This document shows, in pieces, positions 11,418-43,020 of a stretch of 64,000 nucleotides of DNA. Source of the DNA: Macrostomum lignano (taxonomy: Eukaryota); contig NIVC01003343.1 in assembly GCA_002269645.1 (NCBI GenBank), positions 1 through 64,000 of the forward strand. The letters are read 5' to 3'. Every line of letters begins with the position of its first letter. Position 1 is the first letter of the stretch. The position numbers and the translations under genes were made by a program. Under the pieces are notes generated by a model. It was not told the origin of the DNA. It searched no databases and worked only from the letters and a program-made list of their open reading frames with translations.

Positions 11418-12892
11418 TCAAAGCACCGTGCAAGTTTTCAAATAATTCGCGGTGGAAGGCGGTCGCTGATCCTCCAGCACGTCCATCTCGCGCATCAGCC
11501 GCCATTCCTCCTGCACATCGTCGCTGTGAAACTTCAGCTTGGACTCCTCCATCAGCTGCTGGATGGAGCCGTTCCGTCCACCGAGCTCTTCTGGCAGCAA
11601 AGCCTCGGCTTCTTCTTCACCAATCAATCGGCGCAGTTTATCGAGATCTTTGCCAACCCGATGCAGCCGGTCTTTCAGCTTCTGCTTGAGCAGCGGGGCG
11701 CTTTTGATGAACGCGTAGATAACGTCAAAGTACAGCGGCTCGTTCAAGTAGATGACGGACTTCACCCTGACGGGAAACGCATCCTGCCAGTTTCTTATCA
11801 AGCTGAACAAAGTTTTCCTGTTCTCAAACAGTTTCAGTTGCTTTTTACTAATCTGGTTCATGTCCACTATGACCGTGACTCCGCTCGTCTGGCTGTGCGG
11901 GTCCACCAGCGCTACGTCAGCTGTCATGTAGAGTGTGGTGACCAGCTGGTCGAATGGCATCAGGTCCGGGTCCCAATACTGCAGAGCCGACAGGTAGACA
12001 GCCTCGCCACTGGCTTTATAGCCCAGGTGCAAATGAACGAACGGCTGTTCAAGGTAGCGAAGCACTCGCTCGTCATCCAATGCCGGATAGTCGAACCAGT
12101 GAGGCGAGCCGCGACTGGACTTGCGGATTGTCACATAGTTGTCCAGCATCATCTGCGCCCGCTCCAGGTCCATCTTTGCCACGCGAAGGAAGCGTAGAAG
12201 GAAGTCGTCGTCTTGAGAGAAAATTGAGGAATATCAGTCAATCAGAGAAACTTCGTATTTACTAAGAACTGGAGCCAAAGCTACTGCAATGAGGTGCCAA
12301 AGCTACTGCAATGAGGTGCCAAAGCTACTGCAATGGGGTGCCAAAGCTACTGCAATGAGGTGCCAAAGCTACTGCAATGAGGTGCCAAAGCTACTGCAAT
12401 GAGGTGCCAAAGCTACTGCAATGAGGTGCCAAAGCTACTGCAATGAGGTGCCAAAGCTACTGCAATGAGGTGCCAAAGCTACTGCAATGAGGTGCCAAAG
12501 CTACTGCAATGAGGTGCCAAAGCTACTGCAATGAGGTGCCAAAGCTACTGCAATGAGGTGCCAAAGCTACTGCAATGAGGTGCCAAAGCTACTGCAATGA
12601 GGTGCCAAAGCTACTGCAATGAGGTGCCAAAGCTACTGCAATGAGGCGCCAAACGCTAAACGATGAAATGACAATGGGGCGCCAAAGCGAACCGAATCCA
12701 ATTATTAAAGTACGATAACTAGAAGATCATCTCACCATCGCGGCAGATGAGATGCGGCATGCTATCCAGCCACATTCGCAGACTGGCAATACTCTCCCTG
12801 TAGCGCTGGACATCATCCTGATGATGATCTTCGCGGGCAGCAGAGGACGCGCCGTCAGCGTGTAGCTCCGACGTCGGACACCTCTCCGCCAT
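11418..12892 (-). CDS. CRAL-TRIO lipid-transfer protein (alpha-TTP/clavesin-like); exons 12892-12736 and 12211-11418
   Basis: Exon 1 MAERC...MWLDSMPHLICRD joins in phase to DDDFLLRFLRVAKMDLERA; later GVTVIVDMNQIS, WQDAFPVRVKSVIYLNEP and LPEELGG are typical CRAL-TRIO motifs. Confidence 0.9.
12272..12660. repeat. 22-bp minisatellite in the CRAL-TRIO intron, about 17 copies
   Basis: Unit GCCAAAGCTACTGCAATGAGGT, nearly homogeneous. Confidence 0.97.
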
Positions 12893-14322: not shown

Positions 14323-15353
<1,031 letters not shown>

Positions 15354-15666: not shown

Positions 15667-18600
15667 TCAAAACTTTAGTAGCAAATTCTGCAGCTCTTCG
15701 GTGCTCTTCTTCAAGTTTTCAATCTTCTCCTCAACTTCAGCCTTCAACTGCTTCTTGGTCTCCTCGTCAATATCATCGTCATCGACGCAGTCCCAGATGT
15801 CCTCAGCCATCTGGTTCAGCATGAACGTGATTATGGCTTTGGGAATGCTATTGGCCAGTCTGTTCTCCACGAACCTGATGTAACTGCGGCACTCTCTGCG
15901 CAGAGTTTTCTGCAGAAAATCCGCAGGATCATCGGTAATTGCTTTTAACAACTGCTTGCCCTTATCAAACGCAGGCTTCACAAAAGGCTTCATAGCTGGA
16001 GAAGCGAAAAACTCGGCACCTTCCCGGACTACTGACTCCACGAGTCCCGTCTCTTCTTGTTCTTCCTGTTCCCCTCCTTGAGCTCTGCGGTTAATAATTG
16101 TAACAAAACGTTACGGATTAAAGTAAAAGAAGATGATTAATAATAATGTTATTCAAATATGCAGGAGGGTTGTGATACCCCGAGGTAAACGCTTGTGGCG
16201 ACATCGGCCACAACCAACGCCTGAGGCAATTCTGCCCATTCCGTTGACCCCTGAGCACAGACAAGCGGGTCAATAGGGCACGCAGGCATGCCCTCATACA
16301 CACGCTCACACAGGGTGCTACAGGGTGCCCCCTTGACTGTCAGGTGGTATGTACACTCTCCGTGTAGAGTGTTCTACTTCCCACAAAAAAATCATAAAAA
16401 TTGTTAAATGTTGTCTATTCATAGAATGCTACTATAAGTAGACTAATGCAAACATGCGCAGCAAAACTTAAACCGTGAGTCAAGTTGCTATTTTAACGGA
16501 AACTATGAAAAATGTTACTATGTATAACGAACAATGAATCACCTTACCATTTATAACGCAAAAAATAATCATGTCGTCGAGGTATTTCCTTCAGACCAAG
16601 TCAACCGAGACTCGGCTGAGTTCTTGCGGTAAGCCTAACTCATTTGCGCCAGGTCTTAGAGTCGACTCGATATTATTGTTGTGCTTGAATCTATTTGAGA
16701 CTCCATTAGTTGTAGCTTCCAGAAGGACTACCCTGATGGCCATTAGAAGACTATCAGTGATTACCGGAGCTATACCTAGAGTGCATTGAGTCACTGCTAC
16801 AAGGAGAAGGCTTATTTGAAACCGCAGCGCGGCGCAGGGATCCCCATTGTTGATTCAAAGCTTCTGATTGGTCCGAACTACAGATACCGGCCGGAAACGA
16901 CTTCGTTGAAAGTAAAAAGGAACTTGGACCAGAACAACTAAATCAAGACGTCTAAATTGATTGAGATCGAGAACGCACCGAAAGAGCTCTACTGATCAAG
17001 ACTCAAGGTAATAGATACCTTCATTTGATTTCTGGGTTGCCTAGCAGTAGCTAGAAGTGATTGTTCCTTGATTACTAAGAAAGTCTTGGTAGTAAGGAAC
17101 ACATCATCCGTGCCTTAGTCCCCTGATTGTTGTGAATCCTACGACAACCCACAGGCCAATACACACAAGACTCAAATGAAAAACCGATCCAGATGCTTTT
17201 ACCACTGATCTGCTCTGCCCCTCCATATGTAAAACCTCTTATATATCCACGTAGCTATAAGCTAGAGACTTACCCTTCCTGCTGTTTTTGAGCTTCGTCT
17301 CTGGGGCTCTTGTACTCGTAAACGATCGTCTCCATGCTGACAATCATTTCAATCTTTTTAGACACGTCTCGCCTAAGATTGGGAAGATACTCCCTGACCT
17401 TGTCGTTAACAAAATTTTCTAACGGTTCGCGATTCTTCAGCTGCTCTTTGACGATGTCTTGAATATGGCTCTGGATGACGCATTCAATCTCTCCGATCAG
17501 TTGATCAATTATTGGTTTAACAGCATCAATGATGTGCTTCTTGACGATTCGAATTTTAACTGGAAAATAGTTTGGAAGTTTAGTGGTTTCCCGGCCGAGT
17601 TGGTCTTCGCATTCATCCTTGACGATTTTCTTCACTGAAATTTAATAAGTATGGGGACGGATGTTTGCTTATTACAAATAGTATTAAGAATAGAAAGATT
17701 ATTAGAGAGGTTTCAGCAGAATGTCTGGCAACATTAGTTAAGTTAGCTTTGTGCATTCACTTCAACAAACTTCAACAAAATTTTTGTTCACGAGCCTCAA
17801 TTTTAGTGGCCACGACGAACACAATTGAAGCAGGGCTTCTGTAAAATTATGGTTTCGCTATGGCTGCCATGAGGAAACTGCAATGAGCTTGATTAAAAGC
17901 TCCATCCATACAGCGATATGATCATTGTTCAACTCAATAACTTACGGTCATTTATGACGCTTTCAGCAACTTTATTGATCTTCTCGCCAAAGTTTTGCCA
18001 CTGCCTTCGGCATGCAGAGTAGAGCTCATTCTTCTCAGAGCGATGAGACCCAGTCAGCTGCTCTTCAATCTCCTTGTTCACGTTGCGAATGAAGCGCTTG
18101 AACTCGCGCCCTGCATACTCTTGTTCGGCTGTCAGCTTTTTCAACTCGGTGTCTTCAGCTGTCCACAGTTTCTGAAAAGTAATACAAGTGTCTTACCCAG
18201 TCACTAATTTTACACTTTGGGATCGGCTCTCTATCTTTTGAAACTTCACAATTGCATCATCTCTTCTCTCATCTCTTATCTCCTCCTTTTTCTTCCATTC
18301 CCTCTTCTTTCGTCTCTCACCTGGTCATCCATGAACTATATTCTTTATCTGGCCCTTGAGGTAAAAAAGTTTTCCAATCTCTGTTTTGTTCGGTAACAGA
18401 AAAAGCCTCACCAAAACTCTCGAATGAATTTCTTCTTTTCGTGGCTCCAAAATTCGGAACATATGCTCAGCCAGATAACTTATGAGGGCATCGACACCGA
18501 GGTTGAACTGCGGTTGGCTTCTCCAGAACAGCTGCTCATTGAAGAACTTCTTCTCCTTCTCTGAAGAATATGCGCTGTTCTCAGAGTAGCAGTTAACGGC

Positions 18601-20536
18601 GAAAGCGTGTCTCTCGTTGAGCATATCGGTCACCATCTTCTGCTTGTTGTCTGTTAGATTGTCGCAGTGAGTCAGCACGAAAACGGTCCGCTTAAACTCG
18701 GGGTCCAGCCGGCTTGCAAAGCCAAAACCACGAGAAGCCTCGATGTCGTTGATGGCCTTCAGAACGACAACCATCACCACGTTCGGGTTGTCCAACTTCT
18801 CTCTCAGGGCCGTCATGTTTTCATCATTTTCGTTCATGTCACTGTGATGCAGTTATATTTCAGGGAAGCTCAAATTGAAGATATTAGGCGAATTCATCAA
18901 TAGGTACTACAATCTAACGAAAATCGTAGTAATATCAGGAATTCCTAACTATAGCAACTACGGTCTAATTGGTAAATAAAAAGAGGACGTCGCCTTAAGG
19001 ATTTAAATAAAACCCGAAGTAAAACTGCGGGCCAACCTGACCGCCATTGATATTTTACTTGTTACCCCAATCAACTAGAATCGTCGAGACATCACGTTCA
19101 GGTAAAACCAAAAGTTTGTGTAGAATCCTAGGATCATTTTAAATCGGACGGAATAGCAATGATTACTTTACATTTTCCTGTTTCATGTTCATGTCCTTTG
19201 TAGTTATCAGAAAATAGTCAGAGAAATCCCATCGCTGTCTAATCTCAAATGATTTGAACTTTGACCATTGTTGGTTTGTATGCGTCCAGTTACTTCTTTC
19301 TGTGTCTACGTGTATATGCCTTCCATGTAACAACTAAGTGATACGAGCTAACCGACGTTCAGCCGTCTTTGTACACAGTTTCTCCGGTTGGGTCGGAAAC
19401 TTAGGAATGTTGCTCAAGATTTCAATGCCTAACCTGACGATTCCCTTTACCAATACAACTTTTGCTGCTGTGAATCTCAAGCCAACAGAATTCATGGGCC
19501 CTAATCAAAGATTAGCAGACTTTTGAATTACTTCGGGCGACTCCGAATTTCTATCACAGATCGGGGCGCTTAATATTACTAACTATTGAGTCAATTCTAC
19601 TTGACTCTGCTTCAACCCAATGGGCTGATGACCGTTCACAAAGACATGCGGATTATAATTCAACCACTAAGTTTTCTTAGCTGTCTATTTTGTCTCTATC
19701 AGCAGCAGACGCTTTCATCGCTACATTCTACTGTTAATCAAAAAGGTCAATACCTCTTGAATCCAGGAGCGTCCATCACGGTCAGGTTCGGACGGGCTGG
19801 CCCACTGATCTTGATGTCGATGACCGCTCTCATTGACACCTGCTGGTCAGGAAAGTGTTCGTCCATGATCTTCTTCAAAGTTGTCGAAAAGTCCGCTTGG
19901 TCGTGCACGTCAGTTGAAGTGCCATCGAATCTGGATTAGTGCGGCACGAGAATGCTTCATTTTCTGTGAATTCTTGGCAGAAATTGAAATTGTCGAATGC
20001 TTTAATTTTTTGAAAATTAATAATACATGTACACGTAATAGTCCCTGGCATTCAAAAGTCTACCAACCCTATTTTGGAGCATTTTTCGGCTCAGCAAAGA
20101 AGCAAGAAATACAAATTTTAATCTCTTACTCAATTGTGGCTTGCACCTCAGGCTTTTTTCGAATACGCAGCCTAACCAGACATTTCGTACAAGTCCGATC
20201 ACCCTTTGGAAGCTTCACTCCCGCAATTGCCTCGAGTACGGTCGACTTTCCCTCGGATTGGTCGCCGAGCACGACAATCTCCGGCAGGTCGATCTCGCTG
20301 CCCAGCTTCAGCTTGTCGATGGCATCTAGCAGCAGGACGTACCGTTCGTCGACGCTTTTGAAACTGAATTTGTGCAAATTCTGGGGTGGATCTGAGCCTC
20401 TAAGGCTACCGCGAGTTGGCGGTGTCTGCTGTTGCTGCTCCTGTTGCTGCTGCTGCTGTCCCTGGCTCTGAGAAGACCTGCGTCGCAGAAGCAGATCATC
20501 CACATCGAGCAAACCTGAATTTCCTACAGAATTCAT
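15667..20536 (-). CDS. Mx-like dynamin-superfamily GTPase 1, 672 aa; exons 20536-20130, 19930-19754, 18841-18412, 18171-17946, 17634-17274, 16084-15667
   Basis: All six exons have GT-AG borders, compatible phases and sum to 2019 nt. G1 LPEIVVLGDQSEGKSTVLE, G2 TCTKC, G3 DAPG, G4-position THCD, and a GED-like YIRFVENRLANSIPKAIITFML. No PH domain or PRD is visible. Confidence 0.9.
16130..16325 (-). mobile_element. 5'-truncated copy of a second SINE-like repeat (Mx-like gene 1 intron 5)
   Basis: Shares CTGCCCATTCC...CCCCTGAGCA...CAAGCG...ACGCAGGCA...CACACAGG with 21830-21920; (ATT)-rich tail. Confidence 0.45.
16572..17146. mobile_element. Possible old solo LTR in Mx-like gene 1 intron 5
   Basis: Terminal TGTCGT...ACGACA inverted ends; flanks AATCA/ACCCA are not a clean TSD. 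Confidence 0.3.
18205..18385. mobile_element. Decayed relative of the 14323-15353 MITE, without the microsatellite (Mx-like gene 1 intron 3)
   Basis: Shares TTTGAAACTTCACAAT, CTCTTATCTCCTC and TCTGGCCCTT(G/A)A(G/A)GTAA blocks in the same order. Confidence 0.5.
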
Positions 20537-21001
20537 TCTGACAACAGCTGAAAATTGCAATGTCTGCCGGAAAATTACATTCCAGCTCTTTTTTATCTAC
20601 TATTATTTTGATGCAGTAGTTTTCGGTTTCAACTAGGCTTTAGATAAACTCGGGTTTAAATAAGCGAACGTCTGCAGTAATGTCTGCCCGAGGCTATAAA
20701 TAAGTACTTACTCATGACAGCATGGAAAACTCAATGGTAATCTGACCCTAAAATAAAACGGTACTTACTTGTCTACTCAGTATTTTCTTTACTTGCCGCG
20801 CAGATGTGCAGACTTATAGCATTTGCAATAGACTTTTCTCTAACTGTGTGCTTTCAGCTCATCATTAATACAATCATTGTCTCTGGATCTACGAAACTGC
20901 GTGTCTACGTAAGAGACACGTACGTAGAAACAGTCTGCGCCCGCATCTAGTGTAATTGTGAACTTTGTGCACACACAAAAAATGACTCATAGACAAATCT
21001 A

Positions 21002-21196
21002 CAGGGACTACTAAATACTAAAGTCGGATAAAAACTGAGTACGGGACGTTAAAGAAAGATAAATTTTGCGTCAAAGGATAAAAAATCGATCTTCTTAGAG
21101 CGAAAACTAACCCAGCGAAGAACTTTGAAAATCCGACTCATAAACTTTTTGCATGATTCGGCCGTAACCCGTCCCGATTATTTATAGTAGTCCCTG
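21002..21196. mobile_element. hAT-like MITE (CAGGGACTACT family)
   Basis: TIRs CAGGGACTACTA ... TAGTAGTCCCTG, same termini as 53339-53519; no intact TSD. Confidence 0.65.
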
Positions 21197-21749
21197 CACA
21201 TTCAGTAGCCTTTTTTCTCTATCTTTTCTTGACAAATTAAGCAAGCAAGCATCCAAGCAAATTGCAAGAGTCTGACTTTAACTTCATCTAGCTTAATCAA
21301 TAAATAAGATTCCTTTGTCGGCAGAAAATAAGTTTCCTCGACTGTCAACAAAAAGTCTGTTTAAAATTTGTGATACTGAGACGGAATGTATCTCGTGTTG
21401 CCAGACTTCGCCTAGAATTCTACGAACCATAGGTCAGATTTTTTCTGTATTGCTACCAGCTGCTTTTCTGGACTGCACTATACATTATCATGCAATCAAT
21501 AGGCCAACTCAAATGACCCGCTAAGGAGGGATATGCGAGGACTGAAAGAATTCGTAGTATATTCGGTAACAAACCCCCGAGCAAGGTTGCGTTGAAACGT
21601 CAAGTCGAACGCGTCAATTGTGAGCAGCCGGGCGTTTAGTCGTTTGGAATTCTACGCGACTAAATTTCTTAAATACTTTGGCAAGCAGTGCTTTTAGCAA
21701 ACATTTTGGCGCCCCAGAATACGCTATATCTTGGCACCCTGAAGCAAAA

Positions 21750-22095
21750 TTGTTGCATCATACGTGTGATTGTGCGTGTGCAGCCTGGCGCACTTTAAGC
21801 CACATTGTCACACAACCGGCAAGAGGCATTACTGCCCATTCCACCGACTCCCCTGAGCAGGCACACAAGCGCGCGGATACGTACGCAGGCACACACTCAC
21901 ACAGGAGTGTACAGCAGCTATAACTTTATTTATCGTTAGGCATGTACACTTCACTGTGCCTTAGGGGTTGGCCTTTATTGCACGAGCAGAGACAAGCCGA
22001 GATTCAAATTTAGCCCCAAATTAATGTAGTCACTTGGAATCGAGCCTGGGCCGCTGGCACATCAGAGCGCTAGACCACTGGGCTCATGGTCTCCA
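21750..22095 (-). mobile_element. Second tRNA-headed SINE-like family
   Basis: Minus strand begins with A-box-like AGTGGTCTAGCG and B-box-like GGCTCGATTCC; the 3' part is similar to 16130-16325. Confidence 0.45.
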
Positions 22096-22139
22096 GAACT
22101 GCTGATGGTAATGATCCATCCATCCATGGTTTGTTGAAA

Positions 22140-22412
22140 CCTGCGCTAATGGCCAGATGTACAACCGACAGCTCAGCCGCAGCTATTGCGCGGCGCATCT
22201 GAAGGCTGCGTACGGCTGTTCAGTCCAAGGACTGGGGGGGGGGTCGCTGCACACCCTCAATTACCCCAGCTAATGCTGGCACCCATTTTGCAGCTGGTTC
22301 AACTGAAGCAATGCAGTGTTGTGTCTTGCTCAAGGAAAAATTAGTTCAAGATGGTCGAGAATCGAACCCCGACCTTTCGGTGGTCCGCTCTGAACACTGG
22401 ACTACAACCCCC
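22140..22412 (-). mobile_element. tRNA-derived CORE-like SINE, copy 2
   Basis: Reverse complement of copy 1, including CCCTCAATTACCCCAGCTAATGCTGGCACCCATTTTGCAGCTGG. Confidence 0.85.
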
Positions 22413-22716
22413 TATGCTTATTTCACAATAGTGTAGCCAATGCATTCATGAACGCCGTCAGTGGGCCATTGCAGATGCTTGTAGTCATCCAATCAAGTGT
22501 GGACCCGTCGCGTTTTTTGGTTTTGAAAAGATTTTTCCGGATCCTTTCTGCAACGCAATTTTGGTTGGTTAACCCCGCAGCCAATCCATCCGCTTTTTCA
22601 TGAAAGAATTTTCAAAAGTCAATAAATAATGAAGATTGCTTCTGGGCCCTAGGTTTCCACAGCTACAGCTAGCTAGAGCGCGAGACAGAAGCCATTGCCC
22701 AAATCCAACCTCCAGA

Positions 22717-23513
22717 ATGTATTGCCAAACAGCTGCGCACTTTCTAGCCCTTCTGCTGCTACTGACTGCCAGTTCACCAGCGGCTTCAGACTTCACCTTC
22801 GAAATCGTGAGTTCCGTAAGCTCATCGATGCCTGCCAGCATGAAGTCTGTGACTGGCAGCAGCACCGTGGACTGCTCGGTGAAGTGTGCTCAAACAGCCG
22901 GCTGCATCGGTTTCTCCTGGCTGCAGAGTCTGTGCCAGCTGTTCGACTTGAGCGCCTTCTCTGGCACCTGGCTGAGCTCGCCACCCTGTGAGGTCTTCAA
23001 GAAGATAGAAGAGCCGGCAGCTGCTACCAGTAAGGAACAAAACGTCACATACGCGTACTGTTTTATTTTAGTCTGATAAACCTTGAAGCTCATTCAAAAC
23101 TCTGGCTACTCGTTCCCGCAGGTTCTCCGCCCACGAACATAACAAAGTTGAACATTTCCAGCTGCCAGCACAGCAATACCTACCTGAGCTACCACTGCAC
23201 AATCTCTATGGATGGCAACAGGGATCAGACCGTCTACAGCGCCACTGTCCAAGGCATCGGCGAATGGTGGGAGGCTCGGCTGGCCGCTCCAGCTTTCATG
23301 GCCTACCTCACCATCTACAACCGGCTCTCTAGTGCTAATTGGCTCAACAAGTTTAACCTGCTGGTTGATGGCGTCCTGTGCAACCGAGTGGACCTGACAG
23401 AGTCGTTCTCCATCGCCAACTTCACCTGCAACGCTTTCGGCAGCACTGTTCGAGTTGTCAATCAGCTTAGCAATCATCTCGTTATCTGCGAAGTTGAGAT
23501 CTACGGTTACTGA
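22717..23513 (+). CDS. Secreted PAN/apple + F-type lectin-fold (galactose-binding-like) protein; exons 22717-23029 and 23122-23513
   Basis: Signal peptide (HFLALLLLLTASSPA); PAN pattern DCSVKCAQTAGCIGFSWLQSLCQLF; phase-1 GT-AG join; second domain DGN...WWEARL...LTIYNR...LVICEVEIYG matches the FTLD/F5-8C fold. Confidence 0.75.
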
Positions 23514-26500
23514 GACGTCAAGGTCGTGTCAAATGATAACGGATCAACTTTATCCCGAAGCAGCAAAGTCTTACTTATTTCTAACAAACTATAAAACTGA
23601 TAATAATTATACTATTACTCGTAAAAAACTCTGCAGATGAATTTGAAATTTTAGACATGTAGAAACTCTTAATTAAATAAGAACTCCAGGCTACTCAGGG
23701 AAAAAATGAAATGCTGGAAGTACCATTTTCGTCATCACGCTTCAAATCAAACAGTTTTGAATAATTAATGCTGCGTCCCGGACCCACCGCTGAGCCAAAA
23801 AGACTCAACGGCTACTCAAGCCCAGCACTGGCGGCTCTCCAGCTTCCAGTAAGAAGTAAAACTCTATTAACGACAACAAAAACGTTTCCAGGGTTCGGGA
23901 AAATTCAAGCTAAGGAGGACAGTGTGGAGAGAATTAGAGAGTTTTCAGCCTCTTTCCTGTATGCTTTGGAAGAAAGCAGCACAATGGAGGGCAGGAAAAA
24001 TGGATTGAAATACTTGCAGAGGTCCTCAAACCTGTCAGAAATTTTCTATAGGCCTGAATTAAAACTGAAGATTTTTGGGGCGTGCTTTGGTTTTAATCCA
24101 GAGAAGCTTAGTTGTTTTTAGAGGTATTAGCTCAGCGTTGTGTACTGAGGCTCTTGGGTAGCCTTCCCCTAACCCCCCCTTCAGTTCTGAACCACAGCTC
24201 TCCATCCTTTGGTTGCCTGGTGACTTTTGTCTCCGTCTCCCATATTGCCGCTCCGTCTGCCCCTTATTTTCGACATTCATTTGTCTTTTTTCCTTGAATG
24301 TCCTCTTTGAAAGTTAAATAAACAGTTTCTCCACACTTCTTTTGGTGGTGGGTATTTTGTCACATGTTTAAGCTAAGAACTTAACTTAAGTATCGTTTCT
24401 TCAGTGGTTCTTGGTTCCAGCATGTTTACTCTTATTAGCTTGAGTTTGAATTAACGTCAGTTACTAAAAATAGAACAACGACTTTATTGCTTTAAATTAT
24501 GAGCGTAGTCTGGCCAAGAGATTCTAAATCTAGCAACTGGAATGACAACTAAGTAGCGCTGAGGACATTTTTATACAAGATGAGGCTTACTGCGATTGCC
24601 AGACATAGGATTTGTTTGCCGCATCAAATTGGATTGCCACTAACAAAAATCAGCTTCCTTCGCCTTATTTTGTCTTAGCCTGTAAGCACTAATATGCCAG
24701 AGTGACTTTCCTGAAGCCAAGTCTCTGCGTCCTCTGCAGAAGTTTTGCAAGATACAATATTTTTATCCCCCACTTGGGCCGGGCCAAATAAATGGCTCCA
24801 CCAATAGGAAAGCAAGATTCATTTGTCTTGCCCGGCCAAATAAATGGCTAAACCAATAGAAAAGAGCCATTCATTTATTTGGCCGGGCCAGGTAAATGAC
24901 GCAACTTTTGACATAGACATGTATTTTGAGTTACAAATGAACGAGCATCAAACGATGGAACGAGCAATGTTTTGAACAAAAACGGAGATTAAGTCTAATT
25001 AGATGTCATTGAAATGTATATAAACGCTTATTGTTGTTAATCGAAGTTAATTAAATTAATTAATTAATTATCAATTAAAGTGGATGCTGATTCTGTTAGT
25101 CTAACCGCATATTTCTAGTCGCATCTTCTTTTTGGGGGTCGCAGTGTCAACGGCAGACGTTGAGACAGCATCAGGCGGAGCTGTAGGCCAGGTGTTGTTG
25201 TCGCTACTCCAGACGTCATCCTGAGCGTCTTGCTGATCATTCTCTGTTGGTCTACACGGACGGACACTCCAATGTACTTCTCCACGGCGGTGCTGCTATG
25301 CCCCGTTACACGGCATCTATCGGCGCGCTGCATGCCGGATTAGTGCAGCCGGGTGGCGCATGTTGTAAGCACGCCTATAGATAACACACGTTGTATGCAT
25401 TAGTCAGCGCCCCATTAGTTTCACTTCAGGCAAAAATTAGTACAGAAAGTTGTCACTTGTGCCATAGACTACGATTTAATACGCTAGCTGAGTGAGTGTT
25501 GGACATTTAGAATTACTTGGTCTGGCTCACTGCAGATCGAGAAAAACGCTAGATGTGTCCGCTCTAGAATGTCGGTTTCGCCCATAGATATACACGAGCG
25601 TAATAAAAACACTAGGTAGGTCACTCGCCTATTTCATGATTTAGCCACTTAATTTCAATCGAGCGTTTGTATAGAGTTTTTTTAGATAATATTTGTGCAC
25701 CAATTAAAGTGTTATTTTTTATTTTAGATTATATTGTACATTGAAAAGTTGAAAAGTCTGATATGCCTAGAAGAAAGTAGGCTATTCAGAAATCGAGCGA
25801 AATTGCATTAAGTGACCCAAATAGTGTTTTTAGTATTTGTGGTTTTGCTTCAAGATTGTTCCACTACACTAAAAAAAGTTTTGTCTCTGCTCTGGCTCTG
25901 ATGGACCTCTCTCATCACTGAATACCTAGCCGCGAGCTTCTTCATGTTAAGCACAGCACCTTAATTCTCCAACTGGACTGTTCAGAGACTAACAGTGTTC
26001 TCTTCAACCACCCCGAGCCGATAAGGATCTTCTGATTACATGTAGCTACATATGTGGATTAGTAAGTCGACATGAATCTATCAGTGCAACAAAATTCATT
26101 CAACTATTTACCATTGGCTAAATCAGTTTGACAATACCTTCCATAAACAAATGTTGTGCAAACACCATTAAAGAGTATGTTGCCATTGGATGTCAGTAAT
26201 AAACATCTGAATGTTGATGTATTTTAGGCTTCCTGTTTACACGTCCTGCGTGAATGTGTATTATCAAGTCTTCTAACACTACTAGCAGTAAATAAATTTG
26301 ATTATAGTAATCCTTCGTTTATCTGCTTACATCTCTTTGGCATTGGCTAATGAAAAACGCGAGCCTTTCCAAGGTATAAATACACTCATCAAAGGAAACT
26401 CCACTCCACCGCGACAACTCCATACTGGCTGAGCTTCGAAATTTTTAACTCGTCTAAAAATCGAACCAAAAATGCTCGGAAATCAACTAGTTCTACAGGT

Positions 26501-26887
26501 GTTGCTCATAGCAGCTGCAGTCTCGGCTACCACAGCGGATCGGCCTGTGAAGTTCGAGTCAATCAGCAAGCGGGGCGTGGCAACTCCTCCAGCGATGGAG
26601 TCCTGCTCAGGCTGACCGAGGCTGAAATGCGCCGAGCTTTGCTCGCTGAGGTCGGCCTGTTTCGGATTCAGCTGGCTGCGGGCTCTGTGCCGGCTGTTCA
26701 ACTTAACGGCTTTCTACAAATATGACGACTGGGAGAGCGTGGAGCCGGGAGATGTTTACACACGACAGCTTGGTAAGGTTGCCAAGGGACCGTACGATAA
26801 TACGTATTTTCTATAAGCATGAAAGATGTCAATAACTATCAGTTGGTAGCGAAAAAGTCGATCCTATCGATCAATGCACAGATCCTG

Positions 26888-27345
26888 CTCACCAAGAGAC
26901 AGGGGCACCCACCAAGAGACACAGGCGCCCACCAAGAGACAGGGGCACCCACCAAGAGACAGGGGCACCCACCAAGAGACAGGGGCACCCACCAAGAGAC
27001 AGGGGCGCCCAACAAGAGACAGAGGCGCCCACCAAGAGACAGGGGCGCCCATCAAGAGACAGGCGCCCACCAAGAGACAGGCGCCCACCAAGAGACAGGG
27101 GCAACCACCAAGAGACAGGGGCAACCACCAAGAGACAGGGGCGCCCACCAAGAGACAGGTGCCCACCAAGAGACATGGGCGCCCACCAAGAGACAAACGC
27201 CCACCAAGAGACAGGCGCCCACCAAGAGACAGGCGCCCACCAAGAGACAGGGGCACCCCCCAAGAGACAGGGGCACCCACCAAGAGACAGGGGCGCCCAC
27301 CAAAAGACAGGGGCGCCCACCAAGAGACAGGGGCGCCTACCAAGA
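26888..27345. repeat. 20/18-bp GC-rich minisatellite
   Basis: ACCAAGAGACAGGGGCACCC and ACCAAGAGACAGGCGCCC units. Confidence 0.95.
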
Positions 27346-27539
27346 TGTGCCGTTTCTTGTGTATCTGATTAATATATTTTATTGAATTTGGCATGGTAAA
27401 CTTGGTTTACATGTAACTTTGCCATCTCTCCATTGACCAATTGAATTCCTTTCCCGCTGCATTGCAGATGATCCAACAAAGCTCAAGACCGACAGTTGCA
27501 TTCCAAGTTCCAACTAGGGGTGTTTGGGTCGGCCATTTT

Positions 27540-27680
27540 TTCGGGGTTCGGGGTTTACAACCGAACCCGGTACCCCTACCCCGAACCCTGAACCCCGTCC
27601 CGAACATTTCTTCCAACCCCGAACCCCGAACCCGGTACCAAAACCCGACCCGACCCCGAACGTAACCCCGAACATTTTCA
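27540..27680. repeat. Short CCCGAAC-type repeat with inverted copies, probably a DNA-transposon fragment
   Basis: CGGGGTTCGGGGT followed by multiple ACCCCGAACCC. Confidence 0.5.
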
Positions 27681-30422
27681 CGCTTATTTTGGTCAATCAT
27701 TTTAATAAATTCAGTTTTCAGTTTTCAATTTTTCAGTTTTTAGTTTTGAATTTCAGTTTTAAAATCAGTTTTATACATTGAGATGTGCCTTAACAGCTTC
27801 AACCACTTAGCCTTGTGGTTTTATTTCCCTTAGCTACTCTACAACTAGGAAAAGAAATATGAAACACTTCTTGCAATGGGATTGGGATTGAGATGGAAGG
27901 AATACCAAGACCCAAGATCTAATAGTAAGATACATGAAAGTTCACAACTAAAATCGGGACCATTTCGTACCTATACTTACAACGAAATTGCTTTCATAGT
28001 AATATTACATCTGAGTTTATTTAAGCTGCAAAAATAGAGTACAATAAAATTAGATTATACCCTGTAGTGTAGATATCAGTAGAGATAGAACTAGAGCGAT
28101 AAAGAGATAGCACAGATAAAACAATGATACAATGAAACAGGAGAGTTAATCACAAATATATATTTATTTTTACTTTTGACTACAGTTAAAACTTTTACAG
28201 CTTGGTTTTCAAAATGATATCACATGAGTTGCGAGTCTAGCGGAGCATTTGAGCATTTTACAAGCAAATAAAAGTAACAAAAAGCTGCATACGAGCGTAA
28301 TGTGGCTTGCTTGCAGTTTAACTGAATGAGTAGTCGCAGAAATGCAGCGCACGTACATGTACTTCAGTTTCACTCTAGATCTTTCAGCCTTTAATTCTTT
28401 TTTATATAAGTACGAACCAAAGTAACTACATGTATTGGAACTCGTAATCCGGCCCTGTGTACTCATATTATTAAGTTCAACGAACCTACGACAAGTACTT
28501 TTAGTAGAATTCAGACTCATTATTTACATCAAAATCATATAATTGATGAAGCCGATCTCTTAGCCTTTGACTATAGGTCCTCAGACTATAGAAATCGATC
28601 ACTTAAGCTCTGACCTCCCACTCCTGTCAGCCCCAAAGGTAGCAAAGATGCAGCGAGCAGCTGGGTTTTTTAGCTGATAGAGAACAGAAATCGGGTTTCC
28701 GACTATGTAGAAGTTGCACTGAACTGACCAGCTAACCAGTGTCTTTTTCCTGTCCATGTCAAAGTCCTAGTCGATTAAAGGGACACTGGATCGCATTTAC
28801 CATGTGAAGACTGGGACGTGTCTTTTAGGAGGGGGGGGTTCTACATGTAGCTAAGTGCACAAAAAGTAAGCTAAAAGGAGTTGGGAGTCCGGAATTCATT
28901 CGAAATACTTAAAATGTGTGTACAGTGTACATTACATCTGTCATTACCGTAATTCCGTCGAGCTCTGTCTGTAATTAAGTTGCTTGATTTCTGCAGTCGA
29001 TGAGAGAACGAAATGACAACAAAAAATAACCTTTAGGGGAAATGAATTCTATCATTGAATAGAACAGTCTTGAGTACAAATCTCAAGCAAATGCGATCTA
29101 GATTGATCGCAATTAATTTCGAACCTAGAAAACTTGTCTTCATCAGCAGCAGTGGAACTCTCAATTCTGAATCAGGCTTATATAATATGTGACAGTGTGA
29201 TTCGTAGAAGCGTGTATCGTATTTCTTTATTTTCATATGCATACTGTATTCTTTCATTTATTTTAACAATATTCGTACGTATTATTATCGCGCTATTTTT
29301 ACTGTTAATTGCTTTTGTTTTGTAGCCTCGTATGTATTTATTCTATTATTTGTATTATATTCATATCGTTATTATTTCTCGTAAAGTAGTTCTACCTATG
29401 TACTTGTACTGACATATGTTATTCTTGCTTGATATATTTATCGATTAATTTGTACATGTACATTGCGCGCCGCGTGGGGGGTTGTTTGTCTGGGTTTTGG
29501 ATTAAGGGTGTTGTTGTTATCTGTTTACCTTTAAATATATGCTTACACTGCAGTCAGCAGCCGCTCTCGCCCTTCCCCTTGCTTCGCTTTTCGACCTAGG
29601 CTCGCTAACCCTTAGCTGTGACGCTGTCTGGCCTCCTTACACCAACTCTTCCGCCGTCTACCTTGGCATACCAATTAGTTAATTAACTGATCCAGCAATT
29701 TTAAGTAGCACTAGCAAAAGTCTAAGGGTTGAAGCGGCTTGCCGATCTGCTAATTAATCGTGAACTATCTAAATTAACCGCTACACAAATCCGTCTTATT
29801 CGCCTTATTCATCACAAATAATTATCCCAAAGCTAGACAAACAAGACTTTTTTTCTGGAGCATTCCAAGCAGCGAAAAGGACTGCTGTCCGAAAAGAAGA
29901 TTGAAGAGTTCCCCTCTCCAGACAATTGAAAATAAGCGTAGCTACACAAAATAGGTGCTTTACCAACTAATCAATTTTAGTAATTTTAGTCATAATAAGC
30001 TAAACATAACCCCAGTGAGAGGCCAGAGCGAACTTCAGCTTCTCTCGAAGCAAATATAAGGTGAAGTTCTTTAAACATGGCTGTACAAGTGTACTTGAAA
30101 TAAAAATGATGAACACTAAAACGGCGTACAACGGTGTGCATATGCGAGCAGTAAAAGAAGTGGTTTTCTAAGGCCAGAGTACGAAGTAGCTTGTACATGT
30201 AGAGAAAGAAAAGACTAAACAAACTAAAAACAAAACGTTAAATAAGCTGTTGCTAGGTTACTAAAACTATTTAATGTTGTATATAGCCAGGCTGCTGCTG
30301 CATCTGCGCTTGTAATAGCAAATAAGAAACAACTTATACACTACTCTTTGTTACTGAGCTACTGAGCTACTGAGCTACTGAGCTACTGAGCTAGTTGTGC
30401 CTATTGCAACGAATGAAGAAAA

Positions 30423-33400
30423 ATGGCAGGCGATTCTAACAAAGAAAAAATGGAAGAATTGCTTAAAACTTTAACACGCTCAGGCAACAGCGATCCAGCA
30501 GATTTTCCTTCGCGAAATTCATCCACCGGCTTACATGGATCCCAAGCCGATGCCAGCTATGGTAAGAAAATCTAAAAAATGCTTGGTAAAAATTAAAGTT
30601 CAAATTAAATTATAGGCTTGCGGTTCGAAAAGTACACAAAGCGGTATAAACAGCTATCCGTGTCCATAGCTACGCGATGTACGCAAAAGTATTGTCGTAA
30701 AAGCCTACTCATTCTAGTTAATATCACTAGTTTTTTTGTTTGACTGCAATATCAAACTGTAATGATTGCTTCTTCCATACATTTCAAGTTTTACTTATCA
30801 CTCTATCGATGGATTTGTGTGCCAGTCTGTGTACAAATACAGAAAATTATTGTACACATAATGGAAAATTGTGTAAAAGAATATGTAAAAGAAATGTTTC
30901 AGATACGATTTAAATATAAGTAGTTAATAGTTGCAATTCAAACTTTGCACTTGCAAAATATTAAAAATATTGCATACTTTTTTGACACAACAGAACTCTC
31001 AGCGCCGCCCAGTCCATCTCCGAAGCAACTGGTTCAAACTTCAAGTCAAATGAGGACAACTAGCCAAAATACTCGCATCCCTCGGGGCTCCGGGAGACAG
31101 AAACTTAGTTTGAATGACGTGGGCGAACAGTACGTCCTGCTGCTCGATGCCATCGACAAGCTGAAGCTGGGCAGCGAGATCGACCTACCCGAGATTGTAG
31201 TGCTCGGCGACCAGTCCGAGGGAAAGTCGACCGTACTCGAGGCGATCGCAAAAGTGAAGCTTCCTAAAGGGGAAGGCACCTGTACGAAATGTCTCATCAG
31301 GCTAAGTATTCGATGCAAGGATAAAGAACACGCCACGATTGAGACGTGAGTGATTTTGTTTCACGACAATTTTGCTGCAATTGCGTGATATTACGTGATA
31401 AAATTTACAAAAATTGGAAGTCAATCACGTATTTACTTAAACTTTACAACAACAACAAGGCATGAAACCGCCAAGGAACAAAATACACTTCATAAACGGG
31501 GGGGGGTATCAGATCAGTTTTTCAGTAGCCCCGGCGCCAGGGGCCATGCATCGTGAGCAGCAGGACTTTCTTCACCGGTCCGAGTCTCCCGTTCGGTCGA
31601 AAACTATTTTATTCACTTTGTGTTGGATTGCTGAAAGTTTCAGATAGGCAGCTTTCTAATTTGAATGGTGAAAGACTGCAGCGGAGCAAATTACAGACGT
31701 TGGTAAAGAGATGCTAGATTGCGATAAAAACGGAGAGCGGGAATCGTTCGAGAAGTGAAGCCTCTGTCTTGCTTGTAGTTAAATCGTCCTTGGTTTTAAT
31801 GTTGGATTTCCCAAAGGATTTTATCATGAAATCAATTCTTTGTAGATTAAATTTCGTTCATTGGTTGAGGCAGGGCGCTCGTAAGAAAAGCTCTAACAGT
31901 TTGTTAAATCGGGATGGAAAACGCTGCAGCACAGTTACTGTTACTGACTTATTGTAAAAAAAGTTTTTTATAAGCATCTTCAGTGTAAACAACGATTTGG
32001 TCGAGCTTATATGTGCATCCATCAAATATTTTTCAGCTTCGACGGAAAATCAATCAACGTGGAATCTCAAGAGGACTTTTCATCGAAGTTGAAAGATATC
32101 ATGAACGAAAAGTTCCCAGGACAGAATATTTCTATGAACTCAGTCATCAATATAAGAGTAAGCGGGCCAGATCGTCCTAACCTGACTGTGGTAGACGCTC
32201 CTGGCTTTAAGACGTACTAAGTATTTAATTTTCTGACAATTGTGCTGCACAGATTTCATCAGTATAATTACACATCCTGTTTGTAATCTGACTCAATCAC
32301 AGTGACATGAAAGAGGACGACGAAAATACGGTTGCCCTGAGAGAAAAACTAAACAAACCTAACATACTGATGGTTGTCGTTTTGAAGGCAGTCAACGACA
32401 TTGATACTTCAAAGGGTTATGACTTTGCAAAGAGGCTTGACCCGGAGTTTAAACGGACCGTGTTCGTGCTGACTCACTGTGATAACCTTGCGGAGAACAA
32501 GCAGCAGAAGGTGCCGGATATGCTAAGAGATAGAGATGCGTTTGCTGTCCATTGCTACTCAAAAACGGGCAGGTACTCTTCTGACGAGGAAACGGATTTC
32601 TTCAAGCGGCAATCTTTTTGGCAAAACCAACCGCAATCAAAACTTGGCCTCGATGCGCTCATCAGTCACCTAGCGGAAAACATGTATCGAATTTTAAGGC
32701 CAAGGAAAGAGGAATTTCGTTCAAAACTTTTGGTAAATTATTTTCTTGCTGAATAAAAAATATGTTAATTTATATTATCACAGTCCTTTTTTTACTCCAG
32801 AACTTGTGGAGAGACGAGGCCAAAGAGTTGGAAAAGCTTAAAGACGAGAATGATGGTGCTAATTCCGAGTTGAAGAATCTCTTCATTAAACTTAATAAGA
32901 AGCTTGAGGAACAACTTACCGGCACTTGTCGCAAAAAGAAGAATGAACTCTTCAGTGAGTGCAAGATGAAGTGGAACAAGTTCGAGCAGGATTTAAAGAC
33001 GATTGCCGAGGAAGTTCTAGAGCCAAATCATTGTAAGACCTGAAGTTTTATAAGTTGAAACCGTTGCATTCTTAGCTCGCTTTATTTATACATATTCCGG
33101 CCCTGAATCTTTGTCAAACTTTCAGTGAAGTCTATTCTCGATGAGGAGTGCGAGGATCAAGTTGGCGAAGAGTTCAAAGGCCTGCCACACTATTTCCCTG
33201 TCCTAAAAAGAGTCGTCAAAAAGCACATACTAAAGGCTTTGAAACCGACTATTGAGCGACTTATTAGTGATATCGAATGTATTATTCAAGATCGAATTCA
33301 AACTGAAGTGAAAAGGTGCATGGCAAGCCATGAGCCACTTGAGAAGTCTATCAATACGATGATTTGCGAATACCTTCCGGTGCTCCGACGGGATGTAGCT

Positions 33401-34749
33401 AGCAAAATCGATGTCATTATGAGCATGGAGGCAGCTTTCTATCAAAGCAGCTTGGACGTCGATGAGGAAACAAATCAACAGTAAGTTCCTCGTGCAGTAC
33501 GAATAGGTATTTAGAAAATCTGACCAACCTGCTAAACTATCCGAAAACATGCAGTACAAGCGCTTCACAAAATGGGCCCAGAATAACTTTCGAAATGCAA
33601 ATACGCTCGCATTATAAGCAAGCCTATATGGTTGCGCTGCTACACTACGCTGTATACTATAGCTAGCATAAGCGTGTTGAAATGGGTGAAATCATGGATG
33701 AAGGAATAGAAAGGATCGCTCATCTAAAAGCGAGTCAATGGCCAAGGCTTCCTAAAAATTGGGATATTCCCCCCCCATGAATTTCAGTGACTAATGGAAT
33801 TTAATAATAGTCCCCCTAAGCTCTTACTGGCTGAAGCTTGTACGCGAGGGAAATTCCAAAGTCACGATTAACGTTAGACATCTATGTATCAGATTAAACA
33901 TGCCTTTTGAGGGAGTTATTTGTATAAATCACGAGGGCCTGAGGCCCTTGTGGCTGAGGCCCGAGGCCCGAGGGATTTATGAAAATAACTCCCGAAAAAG
34001 GCATGTGTAATCTCGTATAAACCATAGACATTAAGACTTTGCGGGATATTATTGAATTATTGAATATTATTACCAAATAAAATCCCGGAGAACGCAAATA
34101 TTGTCACGGAAAGTCTTTATTTCTATGGATTATAGTCTCGTAACTGATTTCTTCCTCTGGGCCACGACCATGGATGAATAATATAACTGGATCGCCAGAA
34201 GCTCGATTTTTTTGGTCCTAGCCATAGACAAGCACCAGCATCACAAGAAGCTCAGAATGCCGTACTTTCTACGTATTTTCACTTATCCTACTAAGTATAC
34301 TTATAAATAAATGTGTATGGTAAATTTTTTGCAGAGCTCAGGAAGATGGCAAAAAATTGTTGAATAAACTGATCGAAAAGGGAGCAACCGCCAGGCTTCC
34401 AGATGAGTTTCGGCCCTTCCTTGAACCTTTGATAAAAGAAATTGTTCCGCTAGTTACTGGAGCAACCAGCAGTGACTCCACTGAAGTCTTGCAGCAAACC
34501 CTAAGCGTGGTATGTCACAGATACATCGGATTTGTTGTAACTAGAATCGCCACTAGCATTCCAAAAGCGATAATACGCTTCATGCTTAAGCGAATGTCTG
34601 TGGACGTATGGAAATACATCAGTGAAGACAAACTGGGCGAAGAAACAAAGAAAAAACTAAAGGAGGATGTTGAACATAAAATCGAAAAATTGGAACAAAG
34701 TATAAAGGAGCTTCAAGACTTGCTGGCAAAGTTTGGATTAAATTCATAA
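30423..34749 (+). CDS. Mx-like dynamin-superfamily GTPase 2, 699 aa; exons 30423-30561, 30994-31345, 32037-32213, 32303-32732, 32801-33032, 33126-33480, 34335-34749
   Basis: GT-AG exons in compatible phase summing to 2100 nt. Same motifs as gene 1 (GDQSEGKST, TCTKC, DAPG, THCD, YIGFVVTRIATSIPKAIIRFML). The 177- and 430-nt exons have identical sizes in both paralogues. Exon 1 is the least certain. Confidence 0.88.
33891..34013. repeat. Imperfect inverted repeat (about 55-bp arms) in Mx-like gene 2 intron 6; MITE-like
   Basis: AGATTAAACATGCCTTTTGAGGGAGTTATTT...AAATAACTCCCGAAAAAGGCATGTGTAATCT. Confidence 0.7.
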
Positions 34750-40959: not shown

Positions 40960-43020
40960 TTTAGCTGGGATATTAAACACACTGGTATCCAAAGCAGCTT
41001 AGATTAAAGAAACTGTGGTTACAGCTGAGAGTACTGGGATTACAGCATTAAACAACTGGTGTAGTGTGAGCATCTTTTGCGATAGCCTTGTATTCTATTA
41101 GTTAGGTTTTGCATTATTGTTATTGAATTGTTATTTTGCTTTAGTTTAGTCATGCGTTTTGGTGTACTTTTTTCTTGTTAGTTAGAATCTATTTTGCGTA
41201 AACAGGTTAGAAGTCAGACGCCATTTGTGACTCAGCGGAGGGTTGAGCTTTTGTCTGCGAACCCCAGCTTTGCGCGGCCAGCCAATCAGAACCGGCCTGG
41301 ACCCTGGCACGCGGCAAGTTCCAGTTCTACCCGGCGCCGCGGGCACAGTGCAAGTCGGCTTAGCGGGCGGCCGGCCAGACGACCACCACCCGGCTTGAGG
41401 GGGGTTTTGAGGGGTTGTGACTCTGACTATAAATGAAAGTGTGTTTGGCAATCGGATCTCACTTTTCCCCCTTCTTTCCCCGGTTCTTGGTTTTGTCCAG
41501 CTTCCCGGCCGGTGGCCTGTTTCCCTTTGATTCGCGCTTTGAGGCGTTCTGAATTCGTCATCCCCGGTCCATAGTTTTGTTCCCCGCCCGACCGCTTCAG
41601 TCTTGTAGCGTAACGATTCGGCATCCTTGTCTGACGTCGTCGCTATCAAGCGCGGTTTAGATAGAGACTGTCGGATCTGATCAAGTACGCGGCCTCGACC
41701 CCGAGGGCCTCAGTGTCACACTGAAAGGCAGTGCCGATAGAATTTAGTCAGTGCTCCGTTGAACGGTCGATTCGGCAGTGCTCTCGTTTGAGAGTAGGTT
41801 CTGGTTTAGGCCAGGGGTTAGGAGTCTTCTCCGTGGTCGTGTCCGGTTTTCTTCCTCTTCTTCTCAGCTGAGATCTGCTTGCCAGTTGCGTAATCTAATT
41901 ATTATTATTAACCGTTATCGTCGTTTTGTCAACTCTAGTTATCTAGTTAACTAGTTATTAAACCGTCAAGTCAATTGTTTATTAGCTATTCTTATAGGAT
42001 TATCACTCTCTAAATCTTTCGGTTCGCGTTCCCTCGTGTTCTTTCTTTTCTTGTACTGTACCTGCGGCTATTGGAGAAAGACTGGTAGAACTCGCCGACC
42101 GGCGATAGGCGATTAGGATTAATAGCTTTAAAATCTCTGACGCTCCAAGTAGGTTTGTCTAGGGCCTAAATAATTGCTCACCGTGCATGCTATTTATCTA
42201 ATTGCTTTTTTATCACACTGGGATTAAAACAACTGATATAAAAGCATCAAAACAACTAAGATTAAAGCATTAAAACAACTGGGATTAAAGCCACTGGGAT
42301 TAAAGCAACTGGGATTCAAGAAATCGGGATTAAAGCAACTGGGATTAAAGCAACTGGGATTAAAGAAACCGGGATTAAATCAACTGGTATTAAAGCAGCT
42401 GGGATTAAAGCAACTGGTATTAAAGCAGCTGGGAATAAAGCAACTGGGAATAAAGAAACTGGGATTAAAGCAACTGGGATTAAAGCAACTGGGATTAAAG
42501 CAACTGGGATTAAAGAAACCGGGATTAAAGCAACTGGGATTAAAGCAACTGGGATTAAAGCAACTGGTATTAAAGCAGCTGGGATTAAAGCAACTGATAT
42601 TAAAGCAGCTGGGATTAAAGCAACTGGGATTAAAGCATCTGGGATTAAAGCAACTGGGATTAAAACAGCTGGGATTAAAGCAAATGGGATTAAAGCATCT
42701 GGGATTAAAGCAACTGGGATTAAAGCAACTGGGATTAAAGCAGCTGGGATTAAAGCAACTGGGATTAAAGCAGCTGGGATTAAAGCAACTGGGATTAAAG
42801 CAGCTGGGATTAAAGCAACTGGGATTAAAACAGCTGGGATTAAAGCAAATGGGATTAAAGCATCTGGGATTAAAGCAACTGGGATTAAAGCAACTGGGAT
42901 TAAAGCAGCTGGGATTAAAGCAACTGGGATTAAAACAGCTGGGATTAAAGCAAATGGGATTAAAGCAGCTGAGATTAAATCACTAAAACAACTGGGATTA
43001 AAGCAATTAGATTAAAGCAT
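40960..43020. repeat. 15-bp satellite (GGGATTAAAGCAACT)n, interrupted by the solo LTR; main block 42218-43020
   Basis: Degenerate units at 40960-41059 continue after the LTR as a long regular array. Confidence 0.93.
41060..42217 (+). mobile_element. Solo LTR (1158 bp) of the same family, opposite orientation, inserted in a 15-bp satellite
   Basis: TGTAGTGTGAG...TTATCACA; exact 4-bp TSD CTGG at 41056-41059 and 42218-42221. Confidence 0.9.

Follow-up and report, generated by a model that had tools for sequence, protein, structure and literature searches.

Two Mx-like dynamin-family genes with a shared THCD nucleotide pocket in Macrostomum lignano

The stretch of DNA considered here (the window) covers 64,000 nucleotides of contig NIVC01003343.1 in assembly GCA_002269645.1 of the flatworm Macrostomum lignano. 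It is eukaryotic DNA carrying spliced genes, and two of them, here called genes A and B, encode paralogous GTPases of the dynamin family that resemble the Mx proteins. Both proteins carry THCD where the G4 motif would canonically read TKxD, as well as a Tyr at the position of an Arg in the G5 region. An earlier, sequence-only reading of the window took this pair of changes to define an Mx-like subfamily with altered nucleotide specificity, affinity, or regulation. The analysis that follows supports the family assignment and argues for a narrower interpretation of the pocket.

The two genes and their evolution

Genes A and B were rebuilt from open frames and splice sites (Table 1). All 11 introns are bounded by GT and AG, both reading frames are intact, and the rebuilt models reproduce exactly the lengths and outer coordinates that had been given for two complete genes. 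The two are divergently oriented, with about 9.9 kb separating their start codons, and their proteins are 55% identical. A tblastn search with gene A as the query found no other dynamin-like pieces in the window. Gene A is 99% identical to the M. lignano "hypothetical protein BOX15_Mlig010126g3." Gene B appears in UniProt as truncated or mis-spliced versions, P0002 (444 amino acids) and P0004 (274 amino acids), both under the bare name "Dynamin-type G domain-containing protein." Two other contigs of the same assembly (L002 and L003) contain additional copies of the gene A locus, with 98.9% identity over the gene and 95 to 97% in the flanks; the window therefore represents a third copy or haplotype.

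TABLE 1 Positions in the window of genes A and B and of their motifs
Feature	Position	Strand	Description
Gene A	15667..20536	-	Mx-like dynamin-family GTPase; 672 amino acids, 6 coding exons, spliced GT/AG model
Gene A coding exons	20536-20130, 19930-19754, 18841-18412, 18171-17946, 17634-17274, 16084-15667		Last exon includes the stop codon
Gene A G1/P-loop	20243..20266	-	GDQSEGKS, residues 91-98; aligns with Mx GDQSSGKS
Gene A G4	18661..18672	-	T252-H253-C254-D255 (THCD for TKxD)
Gene A G5 region	18580..18597	-	VNCYSE; Tyr280 at the Arg position of Mx and dynamin
Gene A stalk loop	16018..16077	-	Residues 537-556; acidic and disordered loop between helices of the stalk, at the position of Mx loop L4
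Gene B	30423..34749	+	Paralogue of gene A; 699 amino acids, 7 coding exons, spliced GT/AG model
Gene B coding exons	30423-30561, 30994-31345, 32037-32213, 32303-32732, 32801-33032, 33126-33480, 34335-34749		
Gene B G1/P-loop	31206..31229	+	GDQSEGKS, residues 118-125
Gene B G4	32472..32483	+	T280-H281-C282-D283 (THCD)
Gene B G5 region	32547..32564	+	VHCYSK; Tyr308 at the Arg position of Mx

The existence of three copies of gene A allows selection to be followed over a short time scale. The window copy differs from the other two at 10 synonymous and 5 nonsynonymous codons. All five nonsynonymous changes lie within a disordered tail (residues 17 to 65), leaving 9 synonymous changes and none that is nonsynonymous across residues 66 to 672, and the exon encoding G4 and G5 is 100% identical in all three copies. 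Between A and B, the ratio of nonsynonymous to synonymous divergence (dN/dS) is about 0.17 overall, the G domain by itself giving 0.18, with synonymous sites near saturation. The fastest-evolving parts are the L4-like loop of the stalk and the N-terminal tail. The purifying selection that had been proposed for the pair is thus borne out by both comparisons. Pseudogene status was ruled out by the intact frames and this strong selection, and A and B clearly have the appearance of functional genes rather than decaying ones.

The two genes were also said to be otherwise diverged, and this does not hold throughout. Third codon positions reach an identity of about 0.8 near G1 (residues ~55 to 110 of gene A), compared to 0.25 to 0.5 elsewhere, and the nucleotides around the P-loop (20207 to 20374 in A and 31098 to 31265 in B) are 88 to 94% identical. 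Part of exon 1 has, on this pattern, probably been homogenized by gene conversion between A and B, which weakens any argument built on two independently diverged genes. As for the shared double change at G4 and G5, the two genes do share it, but it is better counted as one inherited event in a partly converted pair than as two independent ones.

Family assignment and relatives

What kind of dynamin-family proteins are these? The motifs listed in the sequence-only reading (GDQSEGKS in G1, a Thr in G2, DAPG in G3, LTHCD, and V(N/H)CYS) are present in both, the G2 Thr lying within TCTKC. Pfam detects Dynamin_N in the two proteins (1.5e-26 and 1.7e-27). It also detects a GED in gene A, which passes with 25.1 bits against a curated cutoff of 21.4 (2e-5); the GED match of gene B, at 14.1 bits, falls under its curated cutoff. 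The Pfam scan returned neither a PH domain nor a proline-rich domain (PRD) for A or B, in agreement with an AlphaFold2 model and with the earlier description of the pair. The model (pLDDT 83, pTM 0.65) is that of P0001, a 99% identical database stand-in for gene A whose N terminus is 34 residues longer. It consists of a G domain, followed from about residue 345 to the C terminus by long helices, and disorder is confined to the N-terminal tail and a short loop inside the stalk. This loop, where pLDDT is <50 (residues 571 to 590 of P0001), corresponds to the L4-like loop of gene A, and in the model the connection between the stalk helices is only some 20 to 40 residues long. It is the most divergent segment of the structured region between A and B (pN 0.55, with an 8-residue indel).

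Several comparisons place the pair near Mx. With phmmer, gene B matches PDB entries of Mx2 at 84 bits (8e-23), Mx1 at 80, dynamin-1 at 67, Vps1 at 64, Drp1 at 61, and OPA1 at 59, and Mx2 alone aligns into the stalk. A profile of the subclade, built from A, B, P0005, P0006, and P0008, separates the families more widely: Mx2 scores 235 bits over profile positions 15 to 604 of 609 and Mx1 scores 222, compared to 163 for CmDnm1, 144 for Drp1, 140 for dynamin, 135 for Vps1, and 109 for OPA1. In a Foldseek search with the P0001 model, the MxB entries 4whj and 5uot rank first.

Gene structure provides a further line of evidence. All four mapped coding-region introns of PAA69582 (locus L004), a published M. 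lignano Mx, have counterparts in both A and B. Two of these occupy the same alignment column with the same phase, except that gene B is one column off at one of them, where there is an alignment gap. The other two lie within 14 columns of their counterparts and share their phase. Relative to PAA69582, A and B have one additional intron just past G3, and the 5' part of the gene B coding region contains another. On profile scores, fold, and introns taken together, A and B are best assigned to the Mx/Mx-like branch and not to dynamin, Drp1, Vps1, OPA1, or Mgm1, as had been proposed.

Might they nevertheless be housekeeping proteins of the Drp1, Vps1, or dynamin type, engaged in membrane remodeling and misread as Mx-like? 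They are, after all, dynamin-family proteins, and in Foldseek the P0001 model also matches dynamin-1 and Drp1 at a probability of 1.0. However, a grouping with Drp1/Vps1, which the sequence-only reading itself named among the outcomes that would refute it, is not what the profile yields, the non-Mx families scoring 70 to 125 bits lower than Mx. The absence of a PH domain and PRD also speaks against the idea, as does the fact that dynamin and Drp1 are encoded by other genes in M. lignano, whose motifs are canonical (PMC11789081). Finally, orthologues of A and B appear to be confined to the genus Macrostomum, unlike those of essential housekeeping genes. A housekeeping identity is therefore very hard to credit.

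The vertebrate proteins MxA/Mx1 and MxB/Mx2 are the best matches of A and B in both sequence and fold, and the likeness is considerable. They too consist of a G domain, bundle signaling element (BSE), and stalk with a disordered stalk loop and without a PH domain or PRD, are about 660 to 700 amino acids long, and have a P-loop of the form GDQSxGKS and a Cys in the G5 region (V-x-C). Classical dynamin, by contrast, has a PH domain and a C-terminal PRD. The differences are just as plain: A and B are just ~18 to 23% identical to vertebrate Mx, have THCD instead of TKPD, Tyr instead of Arg in G5, and DAPG instead of DLPG, and come from a host that has no interferon system.

How widespread are proteins of this kind? 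When 1.84 billion cluster representatives were searched exhaustively with HMMER, only 10 proteins came out at <1e-30. Those nearest to gene A are P0005 (28% identity) and P0008 (32%), both from M. lignano. P0006, which is 20% identical to gene A, is encoded by a transcript-like Logan contig (L001, from run SRR30276804). More relatives include the published M. lignano Mx proteins P0007/PAA74204 and P0011/PAA69582 and a chiton "Mx3-like" protein. The close relatives in this search thus come from M. lignano or from the L001 contig only, in keeping with the lineage-specific subfamily that had been suggested. The contig is 2374 nt long, has no introns, and encodes the complete 635-amino-acid P0006 with ITHCDA at G4. 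It is presumably an mRNA of M. lignano or of a related species, in which case it would be the sole transcript-level evidence for a THCD-type protein. In a neighbor-joining tree with 200 bootstraps, A and B group in 100% of replicates, with P0005 in 78% and then with P0006 in 48%.

A family of Mx proteins has already been described in this worm. Langley et al. (PNAS 2025) reported six M. lignano Mx proteins (PAA92268, PAA69582, PAA74204, PAA76532, PAA83069, and PAA94353) and showed that Mx predates interferon and has expanded in M. lignano (PMC11789081). Mlig010126 is missing from the accession lists of that paper and THCD from its alignments, which makes A and B further and more divergent paralogues. 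They share with the published six the species, a gene structure held in common at four introns (PAA69582), and the loss of the G4 Lys. Unlike A and B, to which they are about 20% identical, the six retain DLPG and the G5 Arg (VRCR or VKCR), and in trees they group with animal Mx, while A and B occupy a long branch of their own. Both sets also belong to multicopy, locally duplicated families. About 2.4 kb downstream of PAA69582 (L004, 9907 to 10271), a second copy of its first exon begins, with 90 to 98% amino acid identity, and the published Mx genes are therefore locally duplicated too.

The nucleotide pocket

In HMMER alignments, THCD stands opposite TKPD of Mx, and VHCYSK stands opposite VKCRGQ. 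How unusual are these changes? Among 146 related cluster representatives, the second position of G4 is K in 120, H in 7, R in 5, C in 4, Q in 3, F in 3, M in 3, and N in 1. The Lys is thus missing from 26 of the 146 (18%). The G4 Asp, in contrast, is kept in every one, as it is in A and B, and the G5 Arg is kept in 111. His at this position also occurs in Mx-like proteins with TH.D from Aspergillus melleus (KAK1148777), Actinomortierella (KAF9157780), and Geranomyces (KAJ3144218). The G5 Arg is replaced in two of these, by Lys in Actinomortierella and Pro in Geranomyces, and kept in A. melleus. The third G4 residue in fungal and protist TH.D proteins is P, A, or V rather than C, and TH.D arose convergently there, in lineages independent of A and B.

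The same position is variable within the worm itself. The published Mx proteins have TCPD (four of six) or TFPD (two of six), and the other paralogues have TFPD (P0066), TNCD (P0005), or SHCD (P0008). Every Mx-type paralogue of M. lignano that was examined is without the G4 Lys, so that the loss characterizes the flatworm Mx expansion as a whole. The dynamins PAA65118 and PAA78248 and the Drp1 PAA85687 of the same species, which are different genes, retain TKLD and VVNRSQ. With six published Mx proteins and 18% of the related clusters lacking it, canonical TKxD does not look like a strict criterion for membership in the Mx family. Across the subclade of A and B, the residues at the G5 position are Y, Y, F, V, and R, and G5 is known to be poorly conserved between dynamin families (PMC5084822). 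Two claims of the sequence-only reading fall away at this point: that the altered pocket is special to this pair, and that the G5 Arg is a strongly conserved feature. A search for other THCD-type dynamins, which it had called for, gave a mixed outcome. The motif [T/S]HCD does recur in P0006 (THCD) and P0008 (SHCD), relatives only 20 to 32% identical to gene A, which implies some constraint on the His; TH.D, on the other hand, is also fungal.

Do these changes alter the substrate? As reviewed by Daumke and Praefcke (PMC5084822), guanine specificity comes from the G4 Asp, the catalytic cation is held by a Ser at the third variable P-loop position together with switch I, and the catalytic water is positioned by a switch I Thr. 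The G4 Asp, P-loop Ser, G2 Thr, and G3 are all kept in A and B. The specificity and catalytic elements being all present, a change of substrate is not indicated. Known departures from the N/TKxD pattern in the dynamin superfamily provide further points of comparison (PMC5084822). EHD ATPases keep NKxD and block the guanine amino group with a Met directly after G4. Both A and B have Asn there, and EHD-type use of ATP was ruled out for them. Specificity for XTP was ruled out as well, the G4 Asp not having been changed to Asn. The RD motif of the GBP and atlastin proteins, which differ from A and B in overall architecture, was considered for G4 and rejected. Altered nucleotide specificity, as proposed in the sequence-only reading, thus appears unlikely from the motifs, and GTP most likely remains the substrate. 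The THCD/Tyr pocket probably alters affinity or exchange rate instead.

The opposite position would be that the pocket has been adaptively retooled around His and Tyr, giving a new Mx subfamily that uses ATP, xanthosine or inosine triphosphate (XTP/ITP), or purine nucleotides broadly, or whose regulation is qualitatively changed. There is something to be said for this. The two residues that flank the base have changed together, both to aromatics potentially able to stack on a purine; the motif has been kept between A/B and the distant P0006 and P0008; the exon concerned is invariant among the genomic copies; and the housekeeping dynamins of the same genome have not changed. However, the residue that determines specificity is intact, and Asn rather than an EHD-like Met follows it. 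Moreover, the occurrence of H, N, C, and F at G4 and of Y, F, V, and R at G5 looks like tolerance and not like a single new solution, and G4 motifs without Lys recur well beyond this worm, among the related clusters. We consider such retooling distinctly improbable.

Tolerance raises the converse possibility of a relaxed or degenerating pocket, in which nucleotide binding is weak or dispensable and A and B act mainly as assembling scaffolds. Precedents exist among the vertebrate proteins: some MxB activities are independent of GTPase activity, and an MxA chimera carrying the N-terminal region of MxB stays active against human immunodeficiency virus when GTPase deficient (PMC7592211). The several replacements of the G4 Lys across the M. 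lignano expansion, the variability of G5, and the displacement by one position of an acidic residue that makes contacts in trans would all suit such a role. What is hard to reconcile with it is the strict retention of G1, the G2 Thr, G3, and the G4 Asp. In pockets that degenerate, the P-loop Lys or Ser or the G4 Asp usually goes first. The G domain is also the most conserved part of the protein, with the low dN/dS given above, and the three genomic copies of gene A carry no nonsynonymous change past the tail. A scaffold role is accordingly unlikely.

A proposed role, the surrounding DNA, and significance

The account that we favor, and that is probably correct, is that A and B are paralogues in a very divergent Mx/Mx-like subclade that still use GTP, with the affinity or exchange properties of the pocket shifted and with a role in defense. 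Each protein would consist of a disordered N-terminal tail, a dynamin-type G domain, a BSE, and a four-helix stalk with the disordered L4-like loop. They would self-assemble through the stalk in the manner of Mx, and dimerization of the G domains would trigger GTP hydrolysis; this assembly-stimulated hydrolysis, like the use of GTP, is inferred. The variable loop and tail may be what binds a target, the most plausible one being viral or otherwise foreign, in an animal that lacks interferon. In the pocket, the Lys of G4 and the Arg of the G5 region, which normally lie against the base and ribose, are replaced by His and Tyr, and we take this to be one product of a relaxation, throughout the lineage, of the requirement for the G4 Lys in the Mx-type genes of M. 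lignano, where C, F, N, and H have taken its place. The suggestion of a defense role draws on the family itself, its expansion in copy number, and the rapid change seen in the loop and tail.

Several observations weigh against this account. (i) In the tree, the A/B subclade lies on a long branch beside the animal Mx clade but outside it, there is ~0% support for joining the subclade with the TCPD genes of M. lignano, and the pairwise distances are saturated (~2.0), which weakens any deep placement. (ii) In dynamin, an acidic residue in the G4 loop, Asp211, makes contact in trans with the base bound by the partner. It lies at D+3 there and in vertebrate Mx but appears displaced to D+4 in A and B (THCDNLTD and THCDNLAE), and this could affect dimerization of the G domains. 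(iii) The collections searched, which included Logan-derived proteins, yielded no transcript of either gene. (iv) GTP use by Mx proteins with T[H/C/F/N]xD is a prediction, and an antiviral role for A and B is suggested by analogy alone.

With regard to the first of these, we take the intron evidence and profile scores to be better guides to family than the tree. A neighbor-joining tree of 128 long matches, in which the subclade sat with protist and metagenome sequences, was rejected as long-branch attraction; the grouping with protists was judged an artifact because distances reach ~2.0 and the named neighbors are haptophyte and metagenomic proteins.

A bolder version of the favored account can also be formulated. 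Having given up the G4 Lys, the Macrostomum Mx family may have acquired in its aromatic His/Tyr form a distinct pocket, marked for instance by more rapid exchange, binding that depends on pH, or a wider use of purines, that tunes an interferon-independent defense spread over >10 paralogues. This is an appealing speculation but a rather improbable one.

The DNA around the two genes contains a number of other features. Roughly 370 bp past the 3' end of gene A is an (ATCT)n microsatellite of ~199 copies (14508 to 15295), and a 20-bp tandem repeat with 23 copies (26890 to 27345) lies between genes A and B. Also between them, at 22636 to 23513 (+), are two neighboring open reading frames (ORFs). 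One has a weak match to the PAN/Apple domain (E 7e-4, under the Pfam cutoff). The other ends ...HLVICEVEIYGY and recalls lectin-type domains, although Pfam matches none. The two NCBI copies of the locus have no called gene at the counterpart of this region. Past gene B, two opposed ORFs at 39790 to 40230 (+) and 41182 to 41649 (-) encode nearly the same protein (…WTGDDE.KTPQSANQRETGHRPGSW…PPQAGWWSSGR…) and may mark an inverted duplication or the termini of a mobile element. Neighboring genes encode a protein kinase at 38179 to 39220 (+) (Pkinase, 2.7e-23) and an ERG4/ERG24-type sterol reductase at 46146 to 47642 (-) (4.8e-43). Downstream of gene A is an ORF at 11418 to 12182 (-), where the annotation of L002 and L003 puts a CRAL_TRIO-domain gene. 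Neither the kinase, the sterol reductase, nor this ORF is obviously immune related.

What, then, do A and B add? By their sequences, they appear to be new, divergent members of a known family, absent from the published set of six. The sequence-only reading was right about the family and its lineage specificity, and it overstated both the uniqueness of the motif change and its functional implication; the pair by itself is no indication of a new enzymatic activity. Together with P0005, P0008, and P0006, A and B add to the M. lignano Mx expansion a much more divergent branch that lies outside the published survey. The pattern across that expansion, in which the examined Mx-type paralogues of the worm are all without the G4 Lys while its dynamin and Drp1 keep it, is not discussed in the literature searched. 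M. lignano is amenable to RNA interference and transgenesis. It could therefore serve to ask what Mx does in an animal without interferon and whether the G4 Lys matters.

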